A stretch of DNA of 48,412 bases from Macrostomum lignano (Eukaryota). Both the position numbers and the translations under genes were made by a program. The notes under the pieces are model-generated. The model made no database searches. It was not told the DNA's origin and was given only the letters and a program-made list of their open reading frames with translations. The stretch lies in contig NIVC01004365.1 in the NCBI GenBank assembly GCA_002269645.1, positions 1-48,412 of the forward strand, read 5' to 3'. This document shows, in pieces, positions 1,553 through 48,412 of this stretch (position 1 is the first letter of the stretch; the number at the start of each line of letters is the position of its first letter).

Positions 1553-1619
<67 letters not shown>

Positions 1620-4786: not shown

Positions 4787-6009
4787 CGAGTGGAACTCCT
4801 CCTCTGGAGGAGAAAGGGGAAGAACTCCCATCACCGGAATTCTGAAGGGGAAAAACTCCTATCAGCTGAAATTCCATGACTTGAATCCCATCTTCCAAAT
4901 CATCTCCAAATCCTCTACAATGCATTTCAATTACCGGATATATTGTTTTCCCTATTTGCAAAAACTCACTGGCATTGTCCAGACTCGGACTCTCACGTCT
5001 CTCATATCTCCTCTCTCCTCTTTTTGCTATTATCGTGACTCTCTTCTCTCTCCCCTCTCTCATCTCTACCCCTACTCCCTTATTTATCTCTTCTCCTTCG
5101 TCTTTCGTCTGTACCCTCTCCTGTCTCTTGTCTCCTCTCTTCTCTCATATCTCTCCTCTTCACTTCTGTCTCCTGTCTCCTCTTCTCTTTTATCTCTCCC
5201 TCTTCTCTCCTCTCTCATATCTCATCTCTACTCACTTATCTATCGTCTCTCTTAACCCTCTCTCTTCTCTTTTCTCTTCTCTCTGCTCTCATTTCTCATA
5301 TCTCATATACGCTCTCAGACTCTACTTTCTTGTCTCCCATCTTTCTTTCCTCCTTTCCACTATCCCCCGTCTCTTCTCTTCTCTCTTTTCTATCCTCTCC
5401 ATTCTCTCTTTTCTCCTCTCCTTGCTCCTTTCATCTTCTCCCCTCTCTTCTCTAATCTCTAATCTCTTCTCTCTTATGTTCTCACTCATCTCTTCTCATC
5501 GGATCTCTCATCTCTCCTCTCCTCACTACTTTCCTCTCTACACTCTCTCATATCTGATCTTTTATCTCTCTCCTCTCTCCTCTCTCTCTTCTCCTTTCGC
5601 TTCTCTCTCCTCTCTCTCTCTCATCTCTACTACCTTATTTATTTCTTCTCCCTGGTCTTTCGTGTGTACTCTCTCCTGTCTCCTTTCTCCCCTCTTTTCT
5701 CCTCTATTCTCTCTCCCCTCCTCTCTCATCTCTCATCTCTCATCTCACTCTTTCTTTCTCCTCTACTCTCCCCTCTCTTCTATTTCCTCTGTACGCTCTT
5801 ATCTCTCATCTATTCTCTCTCCTATCATCTCTCTTGTCTCCCTCTGCAATCTCATATCTCCCCTCTCATCTCCTCTCTCCTCTTCTCTTCTCTCTCCTTC
5901 GTTCCCGCCTTACTCCCCTCTTCTCTCCCATCTGTCATGTCTAGTCTCTCCTCTCATTTCTTCTATCTTTTCTTTTCATTCTTCTCTTTACTTTCTTCTC
6001 TGACTGATT

Positions 6010-6345
6010 GAAGATGCCAAATCCATCAAGATCCTTTCCGCGAAGCAGAAAAATCCTGTCCGTGCAACTGAAAGCTATCGAAATCCTCTCCGTGAAACTG
6101 GACTCCTTCGAAATCCTCTCCTTGAAACTTAAATCCATCAAAATCGTCTCCATAAAACAGAAATCAATCGTAAATTATCTCCGCGAAACAGAAATCCTCT
6201 CCGTGAAGCTGAACATCATCGAAATCCTCTCCGTGAAACTGAACACCATCGAAATCCTCTCCACGAAACAGAAATCCTCTCCGTCAAAATTAAAACATTG
6301 AAATCGTCTCCGCTAAACTGGACTCAATCGAATTTTTTCCGTCAA
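6010..6345 (+). repeat. 30/21-bp subrepeat block of the tandem unit (GAAATCCTCTCCGTGAAACTGAACACCATC-like)
   Basis: Tandem degenerate copies; homologous blocks at about 18980-19220, 20380-20650, 22890-23390, 25440-25690, 27540-27900, 30170-30670, 32715-32960, 34820-35180, 36860-36985. Confidence 0.85.
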
Positions 6346-6370
6346 ACAACTCAACTCTCCAGATTAATTA

Positions 6371-6393
6371 GTTAGGGTTAGGGTTAGGGTTAG
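6371..6393 (+). repeat. Interstitial telomere-type (TTAGGG)n cassette, one per tandem unit
   Basis: GTTAGGGTTAGGGTTAGGGTTAG here; same cassette at 19245-19268, 20679-20708, 23419-23442, 25714-25743, 27921-27954, 30695-30718, 32990-33019, 35201-35234; degenerate copy at 47571-47586. Confidence 0.9.
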
Positions 6394-6777
6394 AACTACG
6401 CACAGCTTCGTGTTAAAAGGCACTGATAAAAATATTGAACTAATTGAATCAATTCATTGCGCAACCGATTTCACAGTCAGTCAGTATCAGTCTCAGTTAA
6501 AGATAACAAAAGCATTGCGCAATCTAAATCAACCCTCCAATACACAGCAGCAGTGAGAAGTTGAACCCTCCCCCCAACTTTATCTATTACGTCTCGCAAA
6601 ACTGAGTACAATTTTTGCAGAAAGTTAAAAGTATGGAAGTAGTTTTTGATATGCTGTGCTTTTTCTTTTCATAATTTAAGCAAGCAACTTATATCCCCGA
6701 ACTCAGCGTTGCAAGATCTTTCCAGCAATATAAGTTTCTCCTCTCAAAGTTTAAAACTCGAGGAACAGTTAGCGTTT

Positions 6778-8998
6778 TGATGTAACCACGCTCTGGTCGC
6801 GGGATAGGGCATGGGAACTTTTTCGAAAGTGCCTCCTATCCCGTGCACCCTCTGCACAGAGCTGTCGAGACTCGGCCAGGTCTCCGACCGGGCCTGGAGA
6901 CTCCCGCTCTGCTGCACCCCTCCTGCTGCCTTGGTCCCGTCTCTCCTGCCGCCACACCTGCCTTTCCGGAGCCCCTACCCCTTTCTGTACCTCCCCCTCT
7001 ACCCTATCTCTTCTGTTCCCGCCCTATTCTTCCTGTACTTTCTCTACCTCCTCCTTTTTTTGTCTCCCTCTGCACTCTTTTCCTGCGCTGTCCCCTCTTT
7101 CCCTGTGTCTACTTACAGTACTTTGTGTGCTCACCGTCTCCCCATCCCCTCTCAAACTCCCAAACGGTGACGCAAGTCGTGTGACCCCTTCTCCCCCTCG
7201 GTGACTCATCGATGACTCATCCCCCTCTCTTGCGCAACCTTTTCTCACGCTATTGTTCTCCTTCCCAAATTTCTCATGTGACACCCACCCCACCTCCGCT
7301 TCTATTGTTCTGGTTTTTGCTTCTTTTGTTCTCTCGACCCCCACCAATTATCACATTTTCTCCGATTTTCTCTTTCTTTTGTTCTCGTTTTCGCACCTAA
7401 TTATCACCTTTTCTCCAATGTTTACTTTTCCATTGTTCTCAGTTTTCCCCAATTATCCCCGATTTCCAATTCCTTTGTTCTCGACCCCAGCCCTATTGTT
7501 CTCAATGTTTGCTTGCGCAACACTTTCGCGACCACCCGCTGCGCCAATTATCCCCCCACCCCACCTCCGGATTGCGCAATTTCCCGATTTCTCATGTTGC
7601 TATGCCGGTCTCATGCTTCTCATCATGACTCATTCTGACGTCATTCTGCCGGCAGCCAATCAGAGAGAGGGAGCCATGGTAACGACCTTGAGGAGGCGGC
7701 TGTGAGGTCTATAAAAGGAAGCGATTTCGGCATGAGAATACTCAACTGAGTTTATCTCTGTTCCTCTCCTCGTCCTTCTTTGGACTTGCTGTCAGATTGA
7801 GTTCTGACCCATTCGTCTATAAGACGAATCCCTGCCGGCCCGCGGTCTGTTACCGCCAAGTTATCCTTAGCTCCCCAAGTGAGCTCGCCTATCGGCCAGC
7901 GGTCTGATACCGCCCAGCATCATCAGCATCGCCTGATCTACATCAGCGCCTCGTCGCTCCAGCGCATCGCCGCTTCACCGTCTGCCTGACTGCAGCCTAC
8001 AGCCGCCCTCGGTCACTCCGTCTCTCTCTCTCTCTCTCTGTGCAGCTGCCGGTAAGTTCCTACTACTAATTTGTGCTCTAATTGCCTTTGCTTATCCGGG
8101 GTTTGCCTATTTTCCATTGTCTGATTAGAGAGCTGAGTCAATTGTGATACCGTATCTTTTGCTGTATTTTACTCAATAGTGAAGCCGCCTAATTGCCTGC
8201 TTATTTGCCTAAGGGCCTAATTATTAACTATTAACTAACTTCATCATTATTCAATCTTTCACCATCATTTCACTCATGGCTTGCTAAGCCTTTCTCCCGG
8301 GGTGGCAAAGCATAAGGAAGTTTGGGTAAGCTAATGGCCTCTCCCCGTGCAAAGCCCGCCTGTGAGTGCGTGCTGCGGGGCCGCGTGTGCGTGCAGTAGA
8401 GGGATTAGCGAGTCTTGGCACAGAATGGCAGTAGGAAGGTTGCAACCCCATGCTAACGCGTCCCTTCGCCCTGAGCAATCTAAACTGTAGACAGTACATG
8501 TTCGCCTCATACTACTCTTAGTAATCAAAGTCGCAAGTCAGCCTCGCTCACAGCCACAAAGGATCCCCTGCTGAGAAATCCTCCAGGATTGAGCCCAGAG
8601 TTCCCGATCATGCCCCAAGCAGAGTCCCTGTACTCGGCTGCATGCGTCTCCCCTGTTAGCCTAAATCCCCTGGTAACCAATCCAGGCGGGGCTCTAGCCT
8701 CGAGAGGTCTGGTAGAAAGATCCAGGTGCGCCAGGTCACATAGAGTGGTGGCAGCCACTCGGTCATACCATGACCGAGTGACCAACTATTGCACCTTGGC
8801 TACAGGTGGGGTCCATGTGGGTCCTTGGCCCTCTGGTCACGAAGCGCTACCAAAGCTACTAATCATGTGGGCGGGACAGTCTGGTGCTGGAGGTCCGTCA
8901 GGTCATTGCCCGGTCATAGGCAGCCTACGGTCATTGCCCCCTCTAGCCATGCGTTCGTCTCTCTACGGAGCGGACAGGCGACAAGGGCGGTTACATCA
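6778..8998 (+). repeat. 5' LTR (2221 bp)
   Basis: Begins TGATGTAACC and ends GGTTACATCA (10-bp terminal inverted repeat, TG...CA); direct repeat of 16098-18314. Confidence 0.95.
7202..7716 (+). promoter_or_regulatory. Putative LTR U3 promoter: AP-1, CRE, C/EBP motifs, CCAAT and TATA box
   Basis: TGACTCA at 7202, 7213, 7626; TTGCGCAA at 7230, 7513, 7572; TGACGTCA at 7636; CCAAT at 7656; TATAAAA at 7710; imperfect 50-bp repeats (TTGTTCTC...AATTATC) at about 7330-7510. Duplicated in the 3' LTR. Function inferred from motifs only. Confidence 0.6.
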
Positions 8999-9001
8999 AA
9001 A

Positions 9002-9019
9002 TGGTGGCAGCGGTGGGAT
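9002..9019 (+). other. Primer binding site, tRNA-Leu type
   Basis: TGGTGGCAGCGGTGGGAT, 3 nt after the LTR end; complementary to the 3' end (...ATCCCACCGCTGCCACCA) of eukaryotic tRNA-Leu(AAG/TAG). Confidence 0.85.
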
Positions 9020-10553
9020 TGTATCTCTGTAGGGTATCAGTGTGACTCAAAAATCTCGGGCTAAAAAAAGTGTCACCTCTTATGGAATACCTGCGATCAG
9101 CCCGGACCTGAATTCTGCGGTAACCCCTGGTGCCTTCATGGCTGGGATTCGATCCCAACGTGTCTGCTGACTCTCCCCACTGCATTGCAGACCCGGTAGT
9201 AACTGCTTTGGTTGCATTTGGGCTGGTGCAGTGGCTGGAAATAGTAGATCCCATAGTATCCTATTGATAGTGGAGTTCAGTGAGTATTGGAATGGTGTAC
9301 TGGAAGTCTGGTGGCCCCCAGTGATCTCGTAATGTTTCCTGCTGCATTCTCCTCCTTTAGTAATTCCTCCCCCCTGCTGTCAGTCTGATAGGGGAGGTGG
9401 GTGTGCCAATCAGCCCGACCCGGTAGAACGGCGCTCCTGCCCGACTTGTCAGCCTGGCCCAGGAAGGCGCTATTGCGCAACTCTTTTCCCCTCTGGCCAC
9501 TGCAGCCCACTAAGCGCTTAGACGCAGGGTTGCATGCAGTCCCCTAATGTAAAGCCCCGGTACATAGAGTGCCACCCAATGCCCCGCAAGGTCAATAAGA
9601 CGGGTTGACGTCTCTGGCAACTTGGAATAACCTAGATGGAGGTACCGCTGTCTCCTGGTAGAACCGGGCGTTCAAGTACAGTAAAGTGGAGAGGCTGACA
9701 ACTGTAGGACTTTCTCCGCCATCAGATAAAGGTCCCAAGTATGCTATTTCGAGCTGCAGCAAAGGTGGAGTATCGGAGGGGCAAGCATTTCAGGAAGATA
9801 CTCACTTAGGTCTGTTTATCCTAGGAAAGCGGGCGAGAGTTTCAGGCTTGTAATCCGCCTAACCTGAAAACTTCGGGGACAGTTTAGTCTGGACTCCCGC
9901 TGCGCGCCTTCGCTCTGAACAGAAGGGGGAGGTCTTGGTTTTTGTGGATTCTGCTAGACGTAGGGGAGCTGGATTCCCGCCTTTTGTGAAGCTGCGTGTA
10001 CAAGATTGGTAGTCCTGAGGTGGAAGCCCCACTGGACTCCGACGGTTTTCCGGCTGTGCAAGGGCAGTAAAGTGGGAGGACCTCCATGGGGATTGCTCCC
10101 GCCACTTGGGTTTTTGGGTCAGGCGCCAACGCTTCTTCGTAGTAGCTTTCTTAAGGAAATGGGGTCCGGCGCGCAACCCTAGGGGAGAATTTGTACAGGT
10201 GCCGTAAGTCCGTTTACGGTCGGCATTTGGGTTCCCTAGCATGGCCGCAAAATGAAGGTCAAGTCTCTCTGAATAGCCAATTTTTCCCTGTCAGGATGTG
10301 CCATAGACAACTGGTAGTGGTAGCCGCAGTTTGAGTCAGTGTGCTTTGCCGAGTGAAGCCGTTAGGACTGCCTAAATGGAATTATGTGGAGCCACCCGTT
10401 TTTCAATTTGTTTTCTTCGACGCCGCAAGTGTGTGAGTTTTGTCTGTGTTTGTGTGTTTCGGATCAACTTTTCGGTCTTTACCTGTAGTTGCCCCGGTTT
10501 TCTTTTCTTTTCCTTCCCGGTAGTGGGTACTCCCCCAGCTATCCGGCTTTCAC

Positions 10554-13500
10554 ATGTCACGGGCGCGTGGAGATAGGGTCGTAGAAGCTGTGTGCGCAGA
10601 CGCCCCTGGTCAACCACCCTCGGCCGCTGACACCCCAGCAGTTGCCGCCCCCGCAGCCGCAATGGCCGCAGCCGCTGGTAATCAGGCCAACCAGCCTCCA
10701 GATGCAGTAGTTACTGATGAGCCTGACATAGGAGCTGCCGCTCCTAACCCAGAATCAGGGGGGCATGTCGCCGTTGCGGCTCCTCCCGTTTGTCAACCTT
10801 CTTCAGTCATCGTCCTAGAACCGAAGGTACGCCCCCAGTTTCATCTCGACCCATTCAATGAGTCACGGGACAACATCTTCCTGTGGGTGGGGCGGCTCGA
10901 ATTCAAGTTCAAAGTGGAGGACATCAGCACCGATGCCGATAGAATCCTCACCCTAATCAGCCACCTACAAGGCGAACAGCAAGATATCGTCGTCGGCCAG
11001 GCGAGGCGGCTTGGCACCTATTCTCAGCTGCGTGACATGCTGGTGGAACGTTGCGTAAGTGTGTGGAGCCCCATGGCCCGACACTGCTTCAACCAGACGC
11101 TGGAGCAGGAGCCCGAGGAGAGTGACTTCCGCTTCGCGACCCGCCTGCTCCGCACCCTCCAGTGGACCATGCGTGGCCGGCCGCCGGACGAGATTGATCT
11201 GGAAGCGCAACTTGCCTATATGTCCAAGGCCCGGATGCCGCGAGATGTGCGAATTCAGCTCCTGGCGCAACGACAGTTCCCCGATGTGACCGCTCTCGTG
11301 ACTCGTCACCAGGAGCTGAGCGAAGCCGTACAGTTGGCGGAGGCCTTCGACACCGACTCGCCGGCCCAGCCAGAAGAAACCGAACCCGACCAGCCAACAC
11401 CGTCTCTACCTTCGCCACCGCCGCCGTCTCCTCCGAAGGCTTGGTGGGTGGCGACGGGAGGCGATATGGAACTAACACCGTGGTCGGAGACTACCGTCAG
11501 AGTGCGAGGGCGACCTTGGGAAGGCGACTGTCTGGTGGAGGGAGTCGACATGGAAGCCTTCCCGGAGATCGCGGTCAGTCGCTCGTTGGACCAAGCCGTA
11601 GACGGGTGGGTCCGAGTTCGCCTCATCAACTGGTCCGAAGAACCGGTACAGCTGCCCGCTGGCACGGTAGTAGCGCAGGCGAGCGCCTTAAAGGAAGTGG
11701 CCCTGGTCAACCGGATTACGCCAATGGGCAACACCGGGCCCGGCCCCACAGCCACTCCAAAGGATTCAACAGCTGCCAGGAAGCCGCCGGACTGGATGAA
11801 AGACCTGGAGATGGGCAGTCAACTCTCTCCCCAGGAGCGGCAACGGCTATTACGCCTACTCAACGACAACACCGATGTCTTCGCCGAGGAGGAGAACGAC
11901 CTGCGGGTCACCGACGTCGTCACACACGAAATCAAGTTGACGGACTCGAGGCCCGTCAAGATGCATCCAAGACGCCTCCCTCAGGCCTACCAGGAAGAAG
12001 TGCGGCACCAGGTGCAGGGCTGGCTGGAGACCGGCAAGGTAAAGGTCTCCAAGAGTCCTTACTCCTCCGCGTTGGTCTTGGTCCCCAAAAGCGATGGATC
12101 GTTACGAGTGTGCATCGATTTCCGGGAGGTCAACGAGCGCAGCGTGGCCGAGGTAACCCCTCTGCCTCGAATCGATGAGCTGCTGGCTTCGCTGGGCGGG
12201 TCGGCGTACTTCACGTCCCTCGATCTGCGGAGCGGTTACCACCAAGTGCCCATCCAGCCGGAATGCCGCCCCTACACTGCATTCGCTGTGCCCAATATGG
12301 GGCTGTTTGAATGGAACGTAATGCCGTTCGGACTGAAGGGCGCCCCAAGTACCTTCTCTCGGCTGATGAACCTGGTGTTGGCCGAGCTCCAACCCGCAAT
12401 CGCAATGGCCTACATTGACGATGTCATCGTGCATTCTCGCGATTTTAGCACCCACCTGAATCACCTGCAACTTGTCTTTAACAAATTAAGAACAGCAAAC
12501 CTGCGGCTGAAGCCGTCCAAGTGTGCTTTCGCCAAATCCGAGGTCACCTTTCTAGGATATGTGGTCTCGAGAGAGGGCGTCGCACCCTGCCCGCACAAGA
12601 CGTGTGCCATTGACACCTGGCCGCGGCCCCAGAGCGTCACGGAGGTCCGCCAATTCTTGGGGAAGGCCGGATATTATCGGCAGTTTATTCCCGACTACAG
12701 TGAGGTGGCCGCACCACTGCACGCCCTGACTAAGAAAGGGACGAAGGACATCCCGGGTCGCTGGGGGCCCGAGCAGGAACAAGCATTCGAGAAGTTAAAG
12801 CGCGCCTTGGTTACCGCCCCGGTGCTGCACCACCCAGATTTCGGGCCTCAGGCGGGCATCTTCGTGCTCGACTGCGACGCGAGCTTGAATGCCCTGGGTG
12901 CAGTCCTCAGCCAGAGGCAAGCGGACGGAAGTGAGCGGGTCATCGCCTACGGGAGCCGAAGTCTGGTGTCTAGTGAGCGTAACCACTGTGTCACCAAACT
13001 GGAGATGCTCAGCCTAGTGTTCTTTACGCGACAATTCCGGTATTACCTGCTAGGTCGCCGCTTCATCGTCCGCACTGACCACCGCTCTCTGACGTGGCTA
13101 AGAAATTTCAAGGAGCCGACCGGATTGATCGCTCGCTGGTTTACTCACCTCGCTGAGTACGATTTCGAAGTGGAATACCGCCCTGGGCGGCTACACACCA
13201 ACGCCGACGCGCTCAGTCGCCGGCCTGCACACCAGCATGGGGACTGTCCCATCTGCCGACCGCCAGAGGACGCCCGACCACCAGGGGAGCTGGACGAGGA
13301 CTTGCGAACTTTCCGAGTGGAGACAAAGAGGCGTCTGCTGGAACAGCGGGACCTCCTCAGCAAGGCGGAGCTCATGGAAGCGCAAAGGAAGGACCCTGCC
13401 TTGGCCTGGATCATGCGACGACTAGGAGAAGGTGCAGAGAAAGCCCCGCCAGCTGGGACGGAATTGTGCCCACCCTTGGTGCGCCGGGTGGCCCCTTTTT

Positions 13501-15225
13501 GGGGCTTGCTCAGTGTGGACGAGGGCGTACTAAGGATTGATGTGGAGGGGGTCGCGGCCAAGAAGAAAATCGTGTTGCCCGAAAGCTTGGACCAGAAGGT
13601 GTTCCGGTTGCTGCACGACGATCCTCTGGCCGGGCACTTTGGGCGAAGGAAAGTGGACGAGCGCTTTCGCCAACGGTTCTGGCGCCCCGGCCTGCACCGA
13701 CGGATCGCCGAGATGTGTGCGGCCTGCGAGTGCTGTTTGCGGTCCAAGCCGCACAAGCGGGCCAAAGCTTCGCCGCAATCTCTTGAACTTAGCGAGAAGT
13801 TCTCTCGCATTCACTTGGATTTTGTGGGGCCCCTGGGTCGAGGCCAGAAGTCAAGGAAGGGGAACACCAGTATCCTCACGGTGACGGACAGCTACACCGG
13901 CTGGGTCGAAGCTTACCCTACCCGGGACCAGACATCGAAGACCGTCATCCGTCTGCTGGTGCAGGAATACATACCGAGGTTCGGAGTACCTGACTGGATA
14001 CACACGGATCAGGGACAGCACTTTGAGTCCCGGGACTTCAGCGCTTTTGTGACTCTCTGGGTATCCGCAAAACCCGCACGACGCCATACCATCCTCAATG
14101 CAATGGGAAGGCCGAAGTCCAGCACCGCACGATCCGGGCCCTGTTGACGGCGCAGCTGGAACAGGACCACGACTTGTGGGATGAGAAGCTGCCGCATGCC
14201 TCCTGGCGATGCGTTCCAGCCTGAACCGCATGACGGGGTATTCCGCGTTCAGCTTAACGTACGGGCAAGAGGCTCGACTGCCCTTGGACGTCGCTCTCGA
14301 GCCAGCTGAGGCCGCTCCCGGGCATGCTGCCTACGCGGCCCGTCTGGCGGCGTATCTCGATCAGGCGCGCGCAGATATCGAGGAAAAGTTCGAGACCCGA
14401 GTTCAACACCAAGCGCGCCGACCGCAGAAGTGCCGCAGCCTGGACATCGGTGACATTGTGTTCTTGGCCAACCCTCATCTGGAAGAATGGGAGATTCCTA
14501 AGTTTCACAAGGCGTTCACCGGCCCCTGGAAGGTGGTGGCCCAGCCGTCCCAGGCCGTGTTCGACATCGCCCCGGTGCACCCCCAGCCAGGCAGGCCCGC
14601 GGTATACCGGACCCATCGCGATACGCTCCGTCCCGCGCCGGCCCAATATCAGCCCGAGGTGCCTCAGGCAGCTGCCCGCAAGTCTCCTGCCGGACCGGGC
14701 CGACCACCAGTTCGCCCAGCGCCTCGAGCCCCGGAAGCACCGCAGTGGTTCCCCGACTCCGATTCGGAGGAAGAAGAGGAAATGTATGTCAGATGGCCTC
14801 TGCGAAACCGGCTCCCTCCGGTGACGGTTCCCGCCGAAGTAGCATTGCCGCCGGCAAACCATCCAACCCAACCAGTTGACGTCCCAGAGCCCGCCGCCGA
14901 TCAGGAACCAGTAGAGCAGGGCCCGCCAGCCCCCGAACTGCCCACGCCCCCCGCAGCGGGAGAGCTCGAAGCCAACGAGGAACCGCTGGATGAGCCACCG
15001 TTGGGCCCCGTGTTGCGCCCTCGGGCTGCCCTGAGGCGCCCAGAACGTTGGGGTTACGAGGTGCGGCGGCTGGATTCGACCCAGGAGCAGATGACTCCGA
15101 CTACGACTGGGGCCCTCCATCGGACCCAGAGGACTGCTGGAACAGCAGCATCAGTGGGTCACTTGACTGGGATCCTCCCTGAGGTGCCACTCTTGCGGGT
15201 CAGCCCCTGGCCCCGTGGAGATTAG
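10554..15225 (+). CDS. Gypsy gag-pol polyprotein (capsid-like gag, dUTPase-like linker, RT, RNase H, integrase) with two 1-bp frameshifts in integrase
   Basis: RT LDLRSGYHQ...MPFGL...YIDD; RNase H DCDAS...EMLS...TDH; integrase H-H-C-C (LHDDPLAGH...CAAC), D (IHLDF), D (HTDQG), E (GKAE, in shifted frame), GPW/F module FTGPWKV. Adding one T at 14045-14048 and one C at 14199-14200 joins ORF 10554-14147 to ORF 14209-15225. Confidence 0.92.
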
Positions 15226-37893: not shown

Positions 37894-38346
37894 AAGTTAA
37901 TTAAGTTAGGTAAGTGAATAGAGTAAATTAAGAAAAAAATTTGGACGTTATTTGGGAACAGATATTTTTTCAGATGAATGGCTGCTGTCACATTTATCGG
38001 GCTAGATTTGCACAGAACTGGTTTAGAACTGGTTGGGGTAGCCAGCTAAAGGTTTTAGCACCTTGAAAAAAATTGACAAAAAGGCCTGTGTCGAGATCAG
38101 GTAGAAAGGTCTGTAGGATTTTTTCATTTACTCGTAGACATTGCAGTCATTGTGTAGGGTAGGCCTGCAGCTGTACACTGTGAGCGCATAGAGAAAATCC
38201 AAGAGTTTGGGGTTGATTGTTAGAGGGTTAAGCTTATTTACGCTATTGAGTCAATACACTGTTGTCGTGGTGGGGGCCGATAGTTATTGAGGTGTAAAGG
38301 TGCAGAGTGTCATTTTAAAGTTGATAGTTTAAAGTTTAAAGTTTGT

Positions 38347-38611
38347 TCTGTAGCCTACTGGGCATTCACTGTGTACACTGAACCCTATCACTTCACCGCT
38401 CGCCACCCCCGCCACCCCGGCCCCAACACGGGTTATTTGAATTGAATAGTTGTCAGAAAATTTAAAGAATGATTTTTTCTTGAATGCTGTGCTTTTTGTT
38501 TTCATGTTTAAAGCAAGAAACTTATATCCCCGAACTCAGCGTTGCAAGCTCTTTTCAGCAATATATAAGTCTCTTCTCTCAAAGTTTAAAACTCGAGGAA
38601 CAGGTTGCGTT
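38347..38611 (+). repeat. Direct repeat copy 1 (about 265 bp; matches 47622-47877)
   Basis: TCTGTAGCCTACTGGGCATTCACTGTGTACACTGAACCCTATCACTTCACCGC...GAACTCAGCGTTGCAAG...AAAGTTTAAAACTCG present at both places. Confidence 0.85.
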
Positions 38612-38981
38612 TGAAATTGCGTCTGTACTCTCTCCTGTATCTTTTCCCCCCTCTTTTCTCATATCTTCTCTCTCCTCTCTCCTCTACTCTCTCATCTCTC
38701 ATCCCTCATCTCACTCTTCTTTCTCCTCTACTCTCCCCTATTATCTATTTCCTTCCTATTAACTTTAACTTTAATAAATTATCTCTTGTAGACATTCTGA
38801 TCAATGCTTGGCAGTTAGTTGTTTTGATAACGGAGTCTAATTTTCTTTGCATTAACTGGTTTTTCGTACTCCATATCGCTTTCCCTACTGAGGAGCTTTG
38901 CAATATCCCCTCAAATCCCTGCACTCCTGTCACTCCCTCACCATTTGAAATATCCCATCAGAACTCTGCACCCCTGTGACC

Positions 38982-39140
38982 CAGGGGCGTAGGGAGGGGG
39001 GAGTTAGGGGGGATGTATCCCCCGAAGAGCCTGACCAAAACTTTTTTGTTGCCCTTTGTTGCTATACATTATCACGCGACTGTGCATAGCACTTTTACCT
39101 TGGTGTATCCCTCCGTAGGAAATTCCTGGCTACGCCCCTG
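38982..39140. mobile_element. 159-bp MITE-like element, superfamily unassigned
   Basis: 11-bp TIRs CAGGGGCGTAG / CTACGCCCCTG; flanks CCCCTGTGAC(C) and CCCCTGTCAC resemble an imperfect 10-bp target duplication. Confidence 0.65.
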
Positions 39141-40059
39141 CCCCTGTCACGATCCCTCACCATTTGAATATCTCCAAGGAAGAAATTCTCATTCGCTAAG
39201 TAATTTCGTGTAAATGATTTAGGCAAGTCGGAGACGAAAGTTAATTAATTGAAATTTATTAGAAAAGGCCTCAACACGTGTAAGTTTGAAGATTTCCTGC
39301 CCTTCTGTGCCTCATTTCACGAAGCCACATGTGTTCAGTTATGACTTAAAAAGGCGTTTTGACATTGTGTAGAAGCAGGTATTAAAGTTTAGCAATTGAT
39401 TTGAGATTTAGTAATATATAGTGATGATATAAGCTGTAACAATCATACATTGAAGGAAATTTGTGAAGAGGCCTTTTTCATATAATTACTATTTGTATTT
39501 ACATTGAAAAATTTAGAATTGTACATTATTTTACTTTAGTGACGCAGAAAAGTTAAAAAGCATAATAAAAATAGCAGTAGAAGTATCGAGCTGGGATTTT
39601 TATATAGGAAGTGAAAAATATTAAAGTGCTTAATTGTAGCAACTAAATTTTAATAACAATTTTCCATCGCTTAGTTCTACTGATAGAAAATTTTGGCAAA
39701 TAGCTATTTACAACCTGGGGAATGTATTTGTACGCATGATAATGGAGGGCATCGTGAAAAGAAGAATTTGTAGAAAAAGGATAAAGTGAATTTGATAAAT
39801 TAATCGACAATTCTATGTGGCTGATAGAATCCCCATATGGAACAGTTAATTGACAGTCTTGAATAGCTAGCAGCGAATTTTTCTAGCTTAGCGGGAATTT
39901 TCACAAAGGAGCCAAAATTGCCGAGTTTCGACACGGCGTATGTAATTTTTGATGCCCTGAATTATCAAAGGGAATATTTGAATGGGTGAAATACAAATGT
40001 ATGAGTAATATACAATAAATGAAGGATGACATGCAGAATTCATGAGGCACCCGATCAGG

Positions 40060-40345
40060 GCAAGCACGATAAAACACTTGATCAGATTGAAGCAATGGCA
40101 CGGAGCTGCAGCTGGGCGCAAATTGGTCACAGCTTGGGCTTCAGCGACTCCGAAGGCTGTCCAGGGGACTCTGGCCGGTGGCGTCCTCAGCTACCGGCGT
40201 GTCGACCCTCAGATCCCTGAGCAGCAACGGGCCATTGGGACAGCAGCAACGGGCGGGCTGATGGCACATTCAGCTCGGGTCGATGTTGAGAGGCCAGTCG
40301 TTGAAGTCAAGTTTGAGCAGCTCCGGCGGGAAGGAAAATGAGGGG
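40060..40345 (-). pseudogene. Decayed duplicate of the RepHel helicase C-terminal region (distal copy)
   Basis: Minus-strand fragments FPPELLKLDFNDWP, LLLRDLRVDTPVAEDATG and CFNLIK are collinear with FPPELLNRLDPNGLP, LLLRELRDNVLLAEVATG and CFAMTIHK of exon 9. Confidence 0.6.
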
Positions 40346-40744
40346 AGACTTTAAAGCATGAATCAAGTGTTCTAGGGCTATAAAAATCTTTTAATGTTTT
40401 AATATTAAAAAGCAATAAAAAAGTGGGGCTTGATCGGGTGCAAATAAATTAATAGAAAGTGCGAAATATCAGTCTAGCCTGCAGCAGGGCGTTTCAGATG
40501 TTAATCTTAATTTCAAAATTTCATTATTTACTCGTATACTGCACGTGAAGCATTATTTGCTGTTAAATTTTTAGTTTGAACTTGCAAATTATAGCTTAAA
40601 TAGAAATTAAGTTATAGATATTTTACTTTTGGCTGAGCTGCAGCCCAGACTTATTATTTACAATGATAAATCCGGCAAAAGAAGGACACGAACCCGGTCA
40701 CCTCGGCGCGCTGCTTTGCCTGCGAGGGAGCTGTCGCAGGTCAG

Positions 40745-40878
40745 TGTTGCGCGCCGCGGGATGAAGGCCGACCGCCTTTGAAACTGGGCCGCAGCGACCA
40801 CGGCGACCAGTTCATTGTCCCGCAGATCTCGATGAAGTAACCGGGCTCTATGTCAGCGGCGAGGTCAGAAGTTGCGTG
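40745..40878 (-). pseudogene. Decayed duplicate of the RepHel helicase C-terminal region (proximal copy)
   Basis: RLLHRDLRDNELVAVVAAAQFQRRSAFIPR aligns ungapped with RLLLRELRDNVLLAEVATGIYRGRQVFIPR of exon 9 (about 17 of 30 identical by eye). Confidence 0.7.
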
Positions 40879-43800
40879 CTAGGGTGAGAAAATAAAAATT
40901 TAGCAGTCAAATTGAGTATGAAAATTAGAGTCAATTTCCCTTATAGACTCCCTAAGCATCTATGTCGGCTACCTTCAGACTTAAATTTTTACTTCTAATT
41001 TCTATATTGCCGGTATTGCCAAATTTATATTTCGGGTCACCCAAAAAAGTACAGGCTGAAATACACTAAATTCAGCTGACGACACTAAAATATGTATTTA
41101 GGGATTGAACAATTGAACTTACCAATGAGCTGCCGCAGTACGATGTTCTGCGTCCGACCGCCTGGGGCGCGCACCTTGACGCCCGATGCACTCCGCGCAC
41201 GACTCAGAGCCACGTAGAGCTGGCCGTGCTGAAAGCAGCCCGTCGTCAGGTCGACGGCGTAGGTGCTCAGCGATTGGCCCTGGCTCTTGTGGATGGTCAT
41301 GGCGAAGCATGGCCGGATTGGAAACTGCAGGCGGCGGAACGTGAAGGGCAGCTCAGCAGGACTCGGCTCCTGTGGGATTCGCGGGATGAACACCTGTCGC
41401 CCACGGTAGATGCCAGTGGCGACCTCCGCGAGCAGCACGTTGTCCCGCAGCTCACGCAGCAGCAGCCGGGTTCCGTTGCACAGCAGCGGTGGGTCGAGGT
41501 TCCGCATCATCATGACCGGCATGCCGACCTTGAGCTCCAGCCGGTGATGCGGCAGGCCGTTGGGATCAAGTCGGTTCAGCAGCTCCGGTGGAAAATTGGT
41601 AGCTGCCACATCGTCGTTCGGAATTGAATCGACTGATAGATAGGCCCGACTGTCTCCAGGAAAGAGCGCCAGGCAGGCGGCGTTGGTCTCGTCTACCGTC
41701 CTGTTGAGCGGCGACAGAATGCTCCGCTCCGCGAACATCTGGTCACGGTGCGGGCTTGGCTCGAACGACGGGTAGACGCGCCGGATGAGCTGCTCAGTGG
41801 TTGTGTCATCAGGCATGAGAATCTCGCTAGGTAGGGAAACCATGCCCTCTTCGTCCTCTGGTAGCTCTCCGTTGCCAACCTAATGGAATTGAGGAATAAA
41901 AGAGACATTTCACGTCATAGAGTTATTTATTTAGTCTCTGTAAGCATGCAGAAATCGATTTAGAAGAATATTGCACATATTTTGAAATTTGTTTTGGAAC
42001 GTAGCTTATGAATGAAAAGCATTAATTTGAAAGTTCGTGCAAAATAGTGAAGGAATTATTTTCTCACCTGCATAAGAAAATCTGCGTAGCTTTTGGCATC
42101 AGAGTCGCTCTCGAGCCGCAGATTTCTGGTCAAGTGGTGCTGCTGGAAATGCGGCCACAAAGCCGACTGAGTCAGGCAGGCGTCGATCGTGTTCGCCTGC
42201 GTTCCTCCGGGCACTACAGCCAGCAGCTGGCGGAAGTCGCCGGCTAGCACCAGCAGCGCTCCTCCGAACGGCTGCTCGACCCGCAGCAGATCTCGCAGAG
42301 ACCGGTCCACGATCTCCAGGTCCTTGCGGTGCGTCATCGGTGCTTCATCCCACACGATGATTCGCGCATTCCGCAGAATTTCTGCGAGCTTGCTCCGCCT
42401 GCCGATGGAGCAAAAGGCATTGTCTTGCCGAACTGCGCAGACGGGTATCTTGAACCTGGGCGGAGAGGATGAAGATTCGGGTTGAACAGCAAAGCTCGAT
42501 ATGAATTGATTAGGAAACGGAAGCCGCTAAAATATGCAAGCAAAAGTCACAAAAAGTGCCAGCAAAGCAGAAATAAAATCAAAAAGGGCGGCTCACGTTG
42601 AATGTGCGGTCCTTCCACCGGGAAGAATGGTCGCCGCAATTCCAGACGATGCCACCGCTACAGCAATTTGACGCTTCGCTCGAGCAGAATTAAGCAGAAG
42701 CGTCAGCAAGAATGTCTTGCCCGTGCCGCCGGGAGCATCGATAAAGTACAGACCGCCACCGCCGGCCTGCATGCTGGACTGAATGGCGTCGAAAATGGCC
42801 CGCTGCTCGCCAGTCAGGGTGCCGATTTGCGCCATGACTTTTGCCTGGAGCTCAACTGCTTCTTCGTTTGTCGGCAGGCAGTCAGTAAGTCGGTGGGTCT
42901 GGGAAAGAGAAAAGAAATTGCTTATAGAAGATTTTGTTTATCAGTTCTGCATTAAAGCTGCACTCTATAGCCTTCCTCAATAGTAAAATTTTCATATTAC
43001 GTGATTATTTTTTCCGCATAAAGAGTACTCGTAAGAAATGAAATTACAGAAATAATGCTTTCATAAGAATAAGTGCACTTACCTGATCCGGCTCTACCCG
43101 TGGCTTAGGCAGGCCGTAGGCAGGCAGCTCGGATCCTCCCATGGTCTCCAGAAAGTTCTCCAGTTGCCGCAGCACTTCCGACTCGGCAGCTTCGGTGCTG
43201 TAGCCCTGGTGCAGCAGGTCGCCAGCCATGTCACTGGAGAACTCGCGCCACAGCTTCGGTGGATCGCTGGGGTCACCATGGGTGAGAATTGCCGCGAAAA
43301 GCCGGCGCAGAGCTGCTGGCAGCCGCGTCTCCACAGCCTCGCGCATGCACAGCTGCCAGTGCTTGTCGTCTTCCAACAGCCCTCTCGCCTGGCAAGCGGC
43401 CTTGAAGGTGGGCAGCAGGACGCCGTCAACAGTGCGCAGCGCCTCGAATGACGTCGGGCCGCGCACGTTCACCAAGAGCAAGCGCAAGTAGAAGCAGTCG
43501 CCCATTCGAGGACTGACTGTGTAATGCGGCCGATATTGCCGGTCGTCACAACGCCAGCTGGCTGACCGGCAGTCTCTCGGCCGCGACCTGCGCGATGCCA
43601 GGTGTGCGCCCTGTTGTCCCAGGTGAAGTGCCGGGGCACCTCTTGGTAGAGAAGGCCGCGCGCGACTTCATCTTGGCGACAGAGCTGGAAAGGTGTATGA
43701 ATGTGTTATGATAAGAAATATTATAATAAAAAAGCGGAGTAATGTTGACTGCTTTAATTAACTTGAAGCATTCTAGTATAAGCATTGCCTATAGTACACA

Positions 43801-46800
43801 GAGATATATGCAGAAGCAATAGTTGGCTGAAAGACTTACATCAAAGAAGGCGGTCAGAGTCGTGTCTTTAGGCCGAGCAGCAACAGCCTGGGCCGTCTCG
43901 CGAGTGAAGAAGACCCGCTGCTCGTCCTTCAGATGAACGGCGAGTCTGATCACAGGGGGGTATCGGCTGTGCACTTCAAAGCCCAGGATCGTATTGACCG
44001 CTTCCATTGGACCGATGTACCTGCCCAGAAGGTAGTCCTTGATCTCGTCAACCATCTTGCCGTGCGCCGACTGACCGACAGTAGGGGCAGTAGTGCTGGC
44101 TGACGCAGATGCAGCCTCTTGTCGGACTTGATAGGCAGCCATGTCGCTACCCTTGGTGATGTACTTGACGACATACTTGATCGCCTTGACTGTCGCGCAG
44201 ATCTCGACATTAAGGTGACAGCGAAACTCGCGCAGCAGCGCTGGGCAGTACGGAACCACCCAGCGGTTGTCGAAGGTGAAATTCGCCTTCTGACCGCCGC
44301 GCAGCTTGGCCATCTTTGTCACCGAAAAGCCGCCCATCTCGACAGATCTGCGGCAGTAGTGCGGGTAGCCGTCTTCTTCAACCCTAGTGGCTGCTAGGAA
44401 TGCTCTCGGGTAGCGTTTGCTGCAGACCCCGTTCTCCATGCACGGCGCTCCCGGGTTGAGCTGCTGGCCACACGGACCATGCAGCAGATTCTCGGCGACC
44501 AGCTTGTGCAAGTCCGCGTCGGCAACTGGGTCCGGGATCTCGGCGCTGATGATTGAGTCGTACTGGTCCGGCTTCAGCTTGTCGGCCAGCCACAGCAGAG
44601 CGTGCACGTGGGGAAGACCTGGATGTGGATAAAATTTAATTTTATTACAATTAACGAAATTTTGGAGGCGACAGATAATGCTACAGTTTAAAGCTTAAAT
44701 GTACACTTGCCTCGCTTCTGGTACTCCAGCGAGCAGACTCGAGCCAGAGTATCTCCGAACAGACTCTTCAGCCTGTTTAGGAAGGCCTTCTTCTTCAGCT
44801 CGAACACCCGGGCGGTGATGTCCGGCCGATCGACGGCAGTCTGGCCCGGAAGTAGCTCAGCCAGAATCTCGGGCCACTTTGGGTTACACGTCATCGTCAG
44901 AAACAGGTCTGGGCGGCCGTAGGCGTGAACGTATGCCATGGCATCCTGCTGACGCTCAAGACGGTAACGTGGCCCTCCGACGTAGCTGGAGGTCAGGATG
45001 ATATGCTTCCCGACTTCTTCCGGGTTGCCGTCGTCCTCGTGCAGCGCGTCTCGGAGACCGCGAAGACTCTCGGACTGCAGGTCTTTCTGGTGCTGCCGAA
45101 TGTACGTAAGTCGCTCGGACTCGATCTTGGCAGCCTGGTCCACCAGGTACTGCTGGAAGAGCCGGCGACCGTACAGCAGGCTGTTGAACTGGCCTGGCCG
45201 CACCTGAATCATGAAGGCGTAGAACTTCATGTTGGTGATGCCGCGATCCTGCTTGAGCCCAATGTGCCAGCCGTCCTCACCGAAGGGGAATAGGAGCACA
45301 TACTCCAACGGATCATAGGAGCGGTGGGTCTCGCAGATATCTTGCAGGCCTGCGAATGAGTAAAAATAGAATTAGGAAGTAATAGAGGAGATAATCAAGA
45401 ATCTGGAAATATTAGCTCTAGGGGAGAATAAAATTTTACGGCTCCTATAAATTAATTGCAGCTACTTCATATAAGCCATAATTGCAGTAAATTAATAATG
45501 TGCCTGTCGATGCCATAGAACTCACCACCATCTCTCAGACGCAAGATCACATCCCGTCGCTGCGCCTGAATTACGCCTTCATCATCGCCAAGGTCCGTTA
45601 GGATGCCAACTTCACTGCACTCGGGCAAGTTGAAGCGCCGGACATGCTCCCCAGATGGGCGGGCATCTGAGTTAATCACGACCTTGGCGTTCTGCAGCTG
45701 CGGATCGCTGCGCAGCAAGTCGACTGCGGACTTGAAGCTGCGCACGTAGCTGTTGCAGTCGTGCAGAGTTGCCTGCAGTTCCGCCAGCAGACGGCTGTTC
45801 AGCCCGGTGGCCCACTGTAGTCGAGTTTGCAGCTCCTCGTCTACAAAGAAGACCTGGCAGAACCGAGCCGGGTCCTCCGGGTTCGGCAACAGGCTGCCGA
45901 TCCGATGGTGCATCTGACCATGGAGGATGAAGCTCGGGTTCCAGCCGGGCTGCTCTCGCTGTGCGGCACCGAGAGATGTCATGTGGAGGGCGCCGTTGTA
46001 CTTCCGAATGTCCTTGAGGAACTGCGAGCTGTCCGGATGCTCGCCAGTCAGCAGTCGCTTCAGGAAATCGGGCGGATCACGGCGCGGCTCCAGGTGGGTC
46101 TGCCGGTTGGGTTTAGAAAACTCCTCATCTTAAACAGGTTATTAAAATTACGGCATGGCAATCAGTAAAAAAACTAAAAAATGTAGCATTTGCATGCTCT
46201 TGCTAGGGTACTCATTAAGTTTCTAAAGCTTCATGCCATTGATAAAGTATTCAATAAAATGATCAATAAAACTAATTAAAAAAACTGGACTCACCTTGCC
46301 AGAGTGGCAGCAGATGCTGGCTGGCTCGTCATTCCAGCGTAGCGCGCCGCAGTGGGGACATTGACGGTCCATGCGGCCGAGGACATGTGGCTGGTGTGCC
46401 AATTCCAGCAGTCTGAGAAGCAAAAAACGGGAAATGTAATTATGAGGATCATTTAAGTAAAGATGCTGAATGTGGATATAAAGTCCTATTACGCTAGGAG
46501 CCTTCTACGTAAAGGTTGTAATGTATGGGCTACAAAAATATACATTATAAAGGTTATAATCTATCTTCTTATATACTAATTTTCACGTGTTGTTTGTCCG
46601 ATAAGAAGTAATAGTAAACTAATTTTAATATTAATAATAAGAACTTATAAAAAAGAACTAATAATACTTATCATAGAATATTATACACAGTAAAAGCATT
46701 GATGTACATTGTAAAATAAAATGAGTGAAACGCCTACCTGTCTCGGCGCCGGTCTGCTTGCGCATGCAGACGCAGGTCGTGCTCATCAGCGGCCTCAGCC

Positions 46801-47216
46801 GTGCGACGCTGACTCTGTCGCTGCCGCTGCACGTCAAGGCGATGCATGTGGACCGTCTGCGATTCACTCGCGCGGCATTCCGCTGTGTGCTGCCGGTCTA
46901 GCTCGCGGCGATGCTGGCGCTCGGCTTCGCCCTCAGCTGCGCGGTCTTCAGCTGTTCGCAGCCGGTCCTGCTCGAGGCGATGCTGGCGGTCGGCCTCGTC
47001 CTCAGCTGCGCGGTCTTCAGCTGTGCGCAGCGGTTCTGCTTGAGGCGATGCTGGCGCTCGGCCTCGCCTCTCAACTGCGCGTCTTTCCGCCTGGCAAAGC
47101 CTATTCTGCTCCAGGCGTGCTGCATGCTCCTCTGGTGTCTCGGAGTCCCTCCGCTTCTTGGCACCAGATGCAGCGCGTGTAGAGCGGGACAAATTGCCTC
47201 GACCGCGTTTAGGCAT
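40865..47216 (-). CDS. Helitron RepHel transposase (STPR-like repeats, Cys cluster, HUH/Y2 Rep, PIF1-family SF1 helicase), 10 exons, about 1550 aa
   Basis: Exons 47216-46738, 46412-46295, 46099-45526, 45349-44711, 44618-43840, 43684-43083, 42898-42597, 42455-42068, 41879-41123, 40878-40865. Splice phases are all consistent once one base is restored at 43523-43524. Rep motifs FLTMTCNPKW, EYQKRG/LPHVH, KYVVKYITK. Helicase motifs APGGTGKT, WDEAPM, GDFRQ, TIHKSQGQSL, HGQLYVALSR. CPHC...CC cluster. The last exon is least certain (unspliced stop at 41085). Confidence 0.92.
46770..47130 (-). repeat. 69-bp (23-aa) tandem repeats in RepHel exon 1, STPR-like
   Basis: RAAEDEADRQHRLEQDRLRTAED / RAAEGEAERQHRRELDRQHTAEC preceded by SETPEEHAARL; 23-aa period as in STPR repeats found at Helitron N-termini. 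Confidence 0.7.
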
Positions 47217-47621
47217 TACAAAAAAAGGAATATATTTGAAGAAAATATTTTAAAAAATATTGAGAGGCGATTGAAACAATCCGGCCAAGTGTGGATCGGT
47301 GGTATCGAAACAAAACGTGACTTTATATAAAGCAATTAGCTGTCCCGTGCCTGCAGCTTTGCGTCACTAAATCTCCACTTCTCTACACCAAGTGTACAAA
47401 CATCGCTTTGATGAGTAAAACTGCTGCCTAACCAACCAATCAGCGGACAGTTCTCTGTGGACTAAATTTTATCTTATCTTCAATGTACATACAGACAATC
47501 GATTTAATTTAATAATTTAGAATTCACCAATTACAATGCACGAAAAGGTGTGAATTCTTCATTGGGCCGGGGGTTGGGGTTAGGGTAACCATAATTTCAT
47601 CGTTCTTTCATTTCATTGCTA

Positions 47622-47877
47622 TCTGTAGCCTACTGGGCATTCACTGTGTACACTGAACCCTATCACTTCACCGCGGCCCGCCACCCCTGGCCCCAACACG
47701 GGTTATTTGAATTGAATAGTGTCAGAAAATTTAAAGAAAGATTTTTCTTGAATGCTGTGCTTTTTGTTTTCATGATTAAAGCAAGAAACTTATACCCCGA
47801 ACTCAGCGTTGCAAGCTCTTTCCAGCAATATAAGTCTCTTCTCTTAAAGTTTAAAACTCGTGGAACAGTTGCCGTTT
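47622..47877 (+). repeat. Direct repeat copy 2 (matches 38347-38611), start of the unit-type 5'-half modules running to the window end
   Basis: Direct sequence match; 47980-48412 matches the post-TTAGGG modules of the tandem units (TTGCGCAA...GAGTACAATTTTTGCAGAAAG...GAACTCAGCGTTGCAAGATCT...GAGTGTACGTTCACTGCCTGC). Confidence 0.85.
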
Positions 47878-48412
47878 CTAATTTCCCAATTTCCCGACTG
47901 CTTGCCTGAGAGGCTCGCAATTTTGTACATTGAATTTCACTGCCAAGCTAATACACAGGCGATAATAAAAAAGTGAACCAATTGAATCAATTGATTGCGC
48001 AATATATTTCTGTGTTAGTCAGTATAAGTCTCAGTTAAAGTTAACAAAAAGTTTGCGCAATCTAATCAACCTCCAATACAAAGCAACTGACCCCTTCCTA
48101 TACACAGCGCCAGTTAGAAGTCGAAACCCCAACTTTATCTATTACGTCTCGCAAAACTGAGTACAATTTTTGCAGAAAGTTTAAAGTATGGAAATGGTTT
48201 TTTTTAATGCTGTGCTTTTTCTTTTTATATTTAAAGCATACAACTTATATCCCGAACTCAGCGTTGCAAGATCTTTCCAGCAATATAAGTCTCTCCTCTC
48301 AAAGTTTAAAACTCGAGCAACAGTTTTGCGTTTGAAACTGTCTGATTTATAGCATTGAAGTATGGAGTGTACGTTCACTGCCTGCTTGCAAGTTGATGCA
48401 TTGAATTTTTAA

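Follow-up and report, generated by a model that had tools for sequence, protein, structure and literature searches.

The 48,412-nt stretch analysed here (the window; positions 1 to 48,412 of the forward strand of contig NIVC01004365.1, assembly GCA_002269645.1) comes from the flatworm Macrostomum lignano and carries on its minus strand, from 4787 to 48412, a head-to-tail array of ten Helitron-type units (U1 to U10). Base composition, open reading frames (ORFs) and self-comparison distinguish five parts in the 48.4 kb: DNA outside the array, the array, an insertion, a higher-order repeat and a 10.6-kb block. Nine units, of 1.3–2.8 kb, lack the RepHel gene, which encodes the Helitron transposase; U10, of ~12.7 kb, bears it. 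A regular expression for the 3′ terminus placed the ten junctions, in plus-strand coordinates, at 4787, 18891, 20276, 21605, 24379, 26658, 28884, 31654, 33938 and 36169, giving U2 to U9 lengths of 1385, 1329, 2774, 2279, 2226, 2770, 2284 and 2231 bp. U1 spans 14104 bp because a long terminal repeat (LTR) retrotransposon sits inside it. The array and its surroundings are laid out as follows.

1–4786: non-array DNA (self-comparison).
4787–36168, minus strand: array of related 1.3–2.8 kb units (self-comparison).
4787–6777, minus strand: 3′ portion of U1, with CTCG at 4787–4790, a CT-rich block, subrepeats and (TTAGGG)3 at 6372–6389.
6778–18314 (11.5 kb), plus strand: Ty3/gypsy LTR retrotransposon in U1, with Pfam matches to RVT_1, RNase H and integrase.
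18315–18890, minus strand: 5′ portion of U1, up to the U1/U2 junction.
18891–21604, minus strand: U2 (18891–20275, 1385 bp) and U3 (20276–21604, 1329 bp), with terminus ...GGAG(G/A)AGTTGGCCTCG.
21605–28883, minus strand: U4 (21605–24378), U5 (24379–26657) and U6 (26658–28883), copy 1 of the higher-order repeat.
28884–36168, minus strand: U7 (28884–31653), U8 (31654–33937) and U9 (33938–36168), copy 2 of the higher-order repeat.
~37000–47560: GC-richer 10.6-kb block with unit-like sequence on both sides (self-comparison).

Read in the element sense, U1 is the last unit of the array, and the DNA from 4786 downward is non-array and starts with T. The modules of a unit follow one another as 5′ region, (CCCTAA)2–5 cassette, 30-nt subrepeats, GA-rich block and 3′ end; U2 and U3 have no long CT-rich block. 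Each non-coding unit holds one perfect telomeric cassette in a constant place and orientation, with CCCTAA on the element sense strand, and these cassettes read (TTAGGG)3–5 on the plus strand at 6372–6389, 19247–19264, 20681–20698, 23421–23438, 25722–25739, 27921–27950, 30697–30714, 32998–33015 and 35201–35230. Units within the window differ from one another by 2–25%. Head-to-tail repetition of a unit of 1.3–12.7 kb is combined here with a higher-order repeat, as in a complex satellite or macrosatellite: the three units U7–U9 are ~99.6% identical to U4–U6 over 7.28 kb (21566–29587 against 28841–36850 in the self-comparison), and the left edge of this duplication lies exactly at a unit junction. 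The duplication is the most recent event in the window, and it fits both unequal crossing-over in the conserved termini and the copying of a three-unit composite. The retrotransposon in U1 has 2221-bp LTRs (6778–8998 and 16098–18314) that are 99.73% identical and have TG...CA ends, a 4-bp target-site duplication (TSD), GTTT, and a pol ORF of 1197 aa (10554–14147); since it is inserted within a unit, the array is older than the insertion.

The units are joined end to end. On the minus strand a junction reads ...CTCCTCC-GAA-GGAGGAG-TTCCA-CTCG and is directly abutted by (TC)TATATATACTAAAGTTGACGCG of the next unit, which reads on as (TC)TATATATACTAAAGTTGACGCGTTGTTTG(TCTG)n, so that the initial annotation was right to describe the unit as running from a Helitron-like 5′ end to a hairpin plus CTCG fused to the next 5′ end; this was found at ten junctions, with CTTC in place of CTCG at two. 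In this family the 5′ end has a TC/TA microsatellite leader of variable length and then T(T/A)ATACTAAA(G/A)NTG(A/G)(C/T)GCG; a 28-nt 5′-end motif has four exact matches in the window and none in shuffled sequences. The 3′ end consists of a conserved ~100 bp and a 7-bp hairpin ending 9 nt from the terminus, with CTCG last (8 of the 10 window units, and all 19 junctions at three other loci, L003–L005, described below). Two terminus types, TTCCACTCG and TTGGCCTCG, occur among the units. The hairpin, CTCCTCC-NNN-GGAGGAG, is present in every copy at 9 nt from the terminus; across the 29 junctions examined (10 in the window, 19 at L003–L005) its stem is constant and its loop variable (GAA, AGA, GGA, AGC or ATC). 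Support for the hairpin, a feature that canonical Helitron1-type elements also have near the 3′ end, comes from conservation, not from folding energy. Terminal inverted repeats were sought by comparing the 5′ 60 nt with the 3′ 200 nt, and no inverted match of ≥8 nt was found. Where the array meets unique DNA, the boundary (marked ^) reads A^TC at L004 and CTCG^T at window position 4786 and at L001 and L002. These elements lack terminal inverted repeats and insert between A and T, apparently without a TSD, as read from a single solitary copy. None of the 29 junctions contains host DNA, and all show a joint of the circle type, CTCG^T(C).

U10 was compared with five further RepHel loci from GCA_002269645.1 (L001–L005). 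Its parts, all on the minus strand, are these.

36169–36194: 3′ terminus, with CTCG at 36169–36172 (CGAG on the plus strand), a 5-nt spacer, stems at 36178–36184 and 36188–36194 and the loop at 36185–36187.
36195–36990: unit-like 3′ part, 81–91% identical to other units (alignment).
36991–41084: 3′ interior, absent from the other RepHel loci examined.
41085–47216: RepHel gene, nine exons (alignment of homologous proteins and inspection of splice sites); exons 1–5 at 47216–46738, 46412–46295, 46123–45526, 45349–44711 and 44618–43840, exons 6–9 at 43684–43083, 42898–42597, 42455–42068 and 41879–41085.
43522–43524 (~43523): 1-nt deletion in exon 6, a missing C; the window reads GGCCGCAT-TACACAG and L003 reads GGCCGCATCTACACAG.
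47217–47555: putative RepHel promoter and 5′ untranslated region, with CCAAT-like and TATA-like boxes seen by eye.
47556–47590: breakpoint at the right of the interior, with 'ttcattgg' and a telomeric cassette in degenerate form, gggttggggTTAGGGtaacc (47565–47590).
47591–48412: unit-like 5′ part, cut by the window end.

As the initial annotation had it, the RepHel gene lies inside one more copy of the unit, with unit-like flanks on both sides. The unit 3′ parts that it placed at 36169–36985 were recovered at 36169 to ~36990 and comprise the conserved ~100 bp subterminal region, a CT-rich run (GA-rich in the element sense) at ~36300–36860 and a remnant of the 30-nt subrepeats at ~36860–36990. 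The unit 5′ parts that it placed at 47560–48412 were correctly recognised, though they are rearranged: 47965–48408 is colinear with the units at 84–94% identity (alignment), whereas 47591–47964 is extra, rearranged sequence that includes an additional copy of a ~130-bp unit segment (47744–47877). The interior, 36991–47555 (10.56 kb), takes the place of the ~40 bp that in ordinary units separate the last 30-nt subrepeat from 'attcattgg(TTAGGG)n'; its position where the subrepeat block meets the TTAGGG cassette was thus correctly called. The bases 47556–47590 correspond to the 'attcattgg(TTAGGG)3-5' of ordinary units. The interior also contains a displaced unit-like piece (38450–38753), made up of the ~130-bp unit segment and a CT-rich run. 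The putative promoter region, 47217–47555, is absent from ordinary units and is not conserved in the RepHel lineage represented by L003. The copy-specific 3′ interior encodes a 143-aa coiled-coil ORF (37462–37893, minus strand) followed by AATAAA. Databases gave a single relative for it, also of 143 aa and with 92% identity, encoded by a metagenome contig of 595 bp in ENA; the ORF may represent a captured gene, a second gene or noise. No endonuclease or other domain was found in the ORFs of 37000–41080, and a search of the 3′ interior for inverted repeats was negative.

The RepHel gene has a coding sequence of 4700 nt and eight introns, seven GT-AG and one GC-AG. Its product combines a Rep/HUH nuclease with two tyrosines and a PIF1-like helicase of superfamily 1: minus-strand Pfam matches are Helitron_like_N (E=7e-53), PIF1 (E=1e-26) and Pif1_2B (E=5.5e-17), and the HUH (LPHVHAL), Y-Y (KYVVKYITKG), Walker A (APGGTGKT) and Walker B (VWDEAP) motifs are all present. 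A frameshift parts the two halves in this copy. The deletion at ~43523, the sole uncompensated indel in the conserved RepHel exons when these were aligned at the DNA level to the paralogue, shifts the frame inside IGRIYTVSP and leads to a stop at codon 942 of ~1566, upstream of the helicase. Outside it the frame is open, for 924 codons upstream and 643 downstream, and homologues, including M. lignano proteins, are all uninterrupted at the point where the window frame shifts. The missing base could be a consensus error. As it stands the gene lacks the uninterrupted frame of an autonomous transposon, and the term 'autonomous' that the initial annotation gave to this Helitron is therefore unproven. 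No frameshift was seen by tblastn in RepHel of the L003 type. The closest relatives of the protein are from M. lignano (76–92% identity); dN/dS between the window and L003 genes is ~0.11 (625 codons, three exons), a value that shows purifying selection between lineages. The ORF ends right after the helicase, with no APE endonuclease, and no subterminal inverted repeat of the Helentron or Helitron2 kind was found, so that in its architecture U10 appears to be a canonical Helitron, neither a Helentron nor a Helitron2.

The other loci show where RepHel elements of this family end. A 9.1-kb RepHel element is present at L003, L004 and L005, 99% identical in three array contexts. Its shared segment begins TTAATACTAAAACTGG, right after the CTCG of the preceding unit at L003 and L005 and after a truncated 5′-end fragment at L004, and it ends ...CTCCTCCAGCGGAGGAGTTGGCCTCG, followed by three different unit 5′ ends; the 3′ end is also given as ...GGAGGAGTTGGCCTCG at all three loci. 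At L002, which has several units, the order is CTCG^TAAATACTAAAG..., the RepHel ATG 1.18 kb further on, an internal deletion and the hairpin-CTCG, that is ...GGAGGAGTTGGCCTCG^T. The 3.6-kb derivative at L001 stands alone and is not part of an array; its 5′ end is as in L002, and its RepHel coding part runs directly into ...AGTTCCACTCG^T. RepHel elements with internal deletions thus exist (L001, L002), and both finish in the unit-type 3′ terminus. TC follows CTCG at most L003–L005 junctions, and the array at L004 starts A^TCTCTCTCTTAATAC. At least four other contigs have mixed arrays in which RepHel copies are embedded, and units at L002–L005 likewise carry the telomeric cassette with place and orientation unchanged. 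Between the window and L003, RepHel exons are 82–88% identical, while introns, promoter and 3′ interior have diverged beyond detection; no non-coding block next to the gene is conserved between the two lineages, and the unit-type terminal regions are the only non-coding sequence that they have in common. In the L003-type element the breakpoints with the unit backbone differ from those of the window, and telomeric cassette, subrepeats and GA-rich block are all lacking; RepHel interiors and unit backbones have therefore been joined more than once. Serial truncated 5′ ends, each a terminus plus 50–125 bp and sometimes parted by TC-rich filler, were observed directly upstream of the complete element at L004 (5090–5320) and L005 (~2470–2610).

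Kinship among the units was examined in a tree of their 3′-terminal 220 nt, for the window and L002–L005. Window units interleave with L002–L005 units; there are at least five clades, with two terminus types among them, and each clade has near-identical members on other M. lignano contigs, where relatives of the window units are 92–96% identical. The terminus type of U2 and U3 is that of the other RepHel lineage. U10 is 6–19% diverged from its neighbouring units over their common parts (alignment), and its nearest neighbour in the tree, at 1.8% distance, lies on another contig. These data support the view that the units and the RepHel copy make up one Helitron family with common termini, in which the RepHel copy is one link of the chain. 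Because of the divergence, the clades, the relatives on other contigs, the mixed arrays and the L003 breakpoints, the array appears, from the loci compared, to be an established, genome-wide trait of the family. Derivation of the unit from a master and of the master from the unit backbone both fit the data.

Altogether, the region is very probably a head-to-tail array of one canonical-type M. lignano Helitron family with common cis-acting ends. The termini are common to coding and non-coding members, the 3′-to-5′ joints are exact and free of host DNA, the architecture is one that can be complemented in trans, and the mixed arrays recur. Helitron circles reportedly carry a 3′-to-5′ joint in the Helraiser work, and the M. 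lignano junctions equal it. In the mechanism that we propose, RepHel supplied in trans would nick the 5′ end and the 3′ end, and the 3′ CTCG of one copy would be ligated straight to the 5′ end of another, giving a joint equal to that of a Helitron circle. The joint could arise by terminator read-through on a circular or sister template or from multimeric rolling-circle products, or else by use of the 3′ cleavage site of a resident element as the integration point; both routes would build chains of complete, heterogeneous elements. Blocks would be amplified afterwards by ordinary recombination (unequal crossing-over, segmental duplication), of which the 7.28-kb duplication may be an example. 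We infer that normal insertion (A^TC...CTRR^T) could not yield a CTCG^T(C) joint, which would be expected from ligation of a 3′ product to a 5′ end. Neighbouring units are heterogeneous, which favours repeated additions or inter-array exchange over a single burst from one circle. The serial truncated 5′ ends at L004 and L005 resemble, by analogy, the rolling-circle signature of plant arrays. A further possibility, which we put forward tentatively, is that the family integrates preferentially, perhaps obligatorily, at resident termini: RepHel would cut CTCG^T and attach there the 5′ end of a new copy, single-stranded or circular, so that arrays would grow in a 'self-homing' manner by whole elements of any subfamily, autonomous ones included, and the fixed orientation of the telomeric cassette would hint that the family arose at chromosome ends or has a role near them.

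Several points weigh against this interpretation or narrow it. U10 spans 36169 to beyond 48412, and its own 5′ end lies outside the window; the initial annotation predicted it within roughly 0.5–1 kb, and alignment to the units puts it ~480–485 bp past 48412, where the sequence to the right is predicted to read ACAACGCGTCAACTTTAGTATA(TA)nGA and then CGAG or unique DNA, at ~+480–490 bp. The 3′ terminus is not the canonical CTRR but a non-canonical variant, CTCG or, in 2 of the 10 window units, CTTC. TC opens five of the nine internal window junctions, the remainder starting TATATAC or TTAATAC. DNA folding recovers the hairpin stem, yet with z = -0.7 to -1.5 against shuffled sequences in a 60-nt context, and the invariance of the stem means that there is no covariation evidence. 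As for mechanism, which we deduce from genomic sequence, no circular or multimeric intermediate was observed, and the data fit both rolling-circle or terminus-directed joining and unequal crossing-over in the conserved termini. The arrays are known here from contigs.

Among the alternatives, the one that fares best is a chain built with no rolling-circle input, in which a few adjacent insertions were expanded and mixed solely through gene conversion, unequal crossing-over and ectopic exchange from one array to another. The ~99.6% identical 7.28-kb higher-order repeat is a classic product of recombination, the termini are the most conserved parts of the units and would serve as recombination hot spots, and unit subfamilies recur in different orders at different loci. 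We nevertheless consider it rather unlikely that recombination did all the work, given that 29 of 29 junctions have the circle-type joint CTCG^T(C) with no host DNA, that ordinary insertion (A^TC...CTRR^T) is unable to make the first such joint, and that crossing-over would not readily give serial truncated 5′ ends.

Much less probable is the model of the initial annotation, in which the adjacent 12–13 kb element was an autonomous master and the units its internal-deletion products, amplified beside it as 'a satellite caught being born'. U10 does hold all unit modules in unit order with one clean breakpoint, internal-deletion derivatives of RepHel elements do occur in the family, and the 3′-terminal 220 nt of U10 are only ~3% from those of U4, U5, U7 and U8. 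Against this, U10 is 6–19% off the units over the parts in common, and their closest relatives, 94–96% identical and near-identical in each of the at least five clades, are on other contigs; the terminus of U2 and U3 is of the other type; no relic of coding sequence, promoter or 3′ interior is left in the units; and the gene of U10 is frameshifted, translation ending at codon 942 before the helicase. Nor does the array look newborn, with equivalent mixed arrays at four or more other loci and an LTR retrotransposon already inserted in it. Rather than being the parent of the adjacent units, the RepHel copy of the window is one link of the chain that was either inactivated recently or mis-assembled.

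There is next to no likelihood that one or more unrelated Helitrons inserted into a pre-existing complex satellite, so that the common flanks would be an interrupted satellite unit. The interior does sit at one point of the unit, and its 4-kb 3′ part is unique to U10. However, a search for private Helitron ends (TC...hairpin-CTRR) beside the coding interior, near 36991 and 47555, found none; gene-adjacent non-coding sequence is not conserved between RepHel lineages; the borders of the 9.1-kb element at three loci are unit-type termini, to the base; and L001 shows these termini outside any array. The initial annotation had itself named RepHel copies with private ends close to the gene and no unit sequence as the outcome that would overturn its reading, and at L001–L005 the outer ends are of the unit type and none lies beside the coding region. 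Since RepHel elements elsewhere are bounded by unit-type termini, this alternative is rejected. It is just as improbable that dispersed Helitron copies were collapsed or chimerically joined during assembly: the region is highly repetitive and the 1-nt deletion could be a consensus error, but the head-to-tail organisation recurs on four GCA_002269645.1 contigs with different neighbours, and unit differences of 2–25% suffice for unambiguous assembly.

Tandem Helitron arrays are already known in plants, frogs, cnidarians, flies and oysters, and the M. lignano array adds a clear example, not a nascent satellite. Canonical Helitron1-type elements, such as Helibat and Helraiser (Kapitonov & Jurka, 2001; Grabundzija et al., 2016, as cited in PMC12628747), have in common with this family an intron-containing RepHel gene with HUH motif, two tyrosines and PIF1-like helicase, the lack of terminal inverted repeats, a subterminal hairpin ~10 nt short of the 3′ end, A^...^T boundaries at unique DNA, internal deletions, and non-autonomous relatives in which the ends alone are shared. 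The M. lignano elements differ from them in their 3′ end (CTCG/CTTC, not CTRR), in a TC that lies in a variable microsatellite and is sometimes missing, and in that the copies seen are almost all linked in head-to-tail chains, not dispersed. In plants, tandem arrays are attributed to rolling-circle amplification (Xiong, Dooner & Du, 2016, as related in PMC12628747 and PMC11934779). According to PMC12628747, the elements in them are truncated, with many 5′ ends for one 3′ end. As far as those accounts go, the plant arrays are alike in their head-to-tail repeats, rolling-circle explanation, serial truncated 5′ ends (here at L004 and L005) and few-to-many units, and unlike in that M. lignano units nearly all have both ends, fall into several subfamilies and include full-length RepHel copies as links. 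The pattern of multiple 5′ ends with a single 3′ end, by which rolling-circle concatemers were recognised by Xiong et al. (2016), is confined here to the patches of serial 5′ ends at L004 and L005 and does not describe the array.

Helitron-derived tandem arrays of 2–7 repeats, or internal 166-bp minisatellites, are described in Xenopus (PMC12001565). Helitron- or Helentron-borne satellites include Drosophila DINE-TR1 (as cited in PMC6581046) and oyster Cg170 and the Helentron HINEs (PMC7492417, PMC8268682; reviewed in PMC12628747). Insofar as these sources describe them, such satellites also combine conserved ends with internal repeats, as M. lignano units do with their 30-nt subrepeat and low-complexity blocks, but there the monomer is an internal repeat, whereas here the repeat unit is the whole element; and unlike Helentrons, the M. 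lignano element has neither an APE endonuclease nor asymmetric terminal inverted repeats. Subtelomeric Helitron-derived arrays are found in Hydractinia and Nematostella (PMC11934779), and Paramecium Helitrons are inserted in telomeric repeats and have a left terminal sequence (LTS)-minisatellite-right terminal sequence (RTS) structure (PMC13085455). These chromosome-end Helitrons resemble the present family in bringing together Helitron derivatives with tandem arrays, minisatellites and telomeric repeats; in M. lignano, known here from contigs, the telomeric repeat is internal to the element, not flanking. We found no description of Helitron arrays in Macrostomum in open-access and bioRxiv text. 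What sets this array apart is that the repeat unit is a complete element with both ends, that several subfamilies and full-length RepHel are joined in one chain, and that each non-coding unit has a (CCCTAA)2–5 cassette in one fixed orientation.

The array is an unusually clean natural case of whole Helitrons, coding ones too, joined 3′ to 5′ as a rolling-circle or circle intermediate predicts, and the host is a regenerating flatworm model capable of transgenesis. If the intact L003-type copies are active, the family could be used for testing terminator bypass and the passage from transposon chain to satellite DNA. For annotation, such arrays should be labelled as Helitron concatemers, not as anonymous complex satellite, and they account for part of the repeat-rich, hard-to-assemble genome of Macrostomum.

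Some minor features of these loci deserve mention. At L003, 12190–12890 holds a ~30-nt minisatellite of its own (gagtgacaaattatgagagt-like) directly past the RepHel stop, unrelated to the 30-nt subrepeat of the window units, GAAATCCTCTCCGTGAAACTGAAAACCATC. A ~240-bp near-perfect palindrome, foldback- or MITE-like (miniature inverted-repeat transposable element), lies directly upstream of the RepHel deletion derivative at L001 (~8000–8240). Right past the 3′ end of the deleted RepHel at L002 is an annotated 226-aa gene (11454–12134, minus strand) with a weak DNA_pol_B_2 match, which may be a Polinton/Maverick-type fragment. In the window, the retrotransposon pol is followed by a 338-aa ORF (14209–15225) with no Pfam match. 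The non-array DNA from 4786 downward, compared with the units, is alike only in its first ~45 nt and in one 28-nt motif, overall not significantly; the stretch at 4740–4786, past the last CTCG on the minus strand, begins TCTAACTATAAAAATCAAAACTGTGTGTGTGTCTGTCTGTG, like a degenerate unit 5′ end. The same left flank has a ~1.9-kb TC/GA low-complexity tract (1528–3383) that is ~71% like the CT-rich block of the units, which may be mere low complexity, and a G-rich 21-nt minisatellite, AGGGTGGGGCTGGAGGGGAGG, in ~17 copies (402–770).

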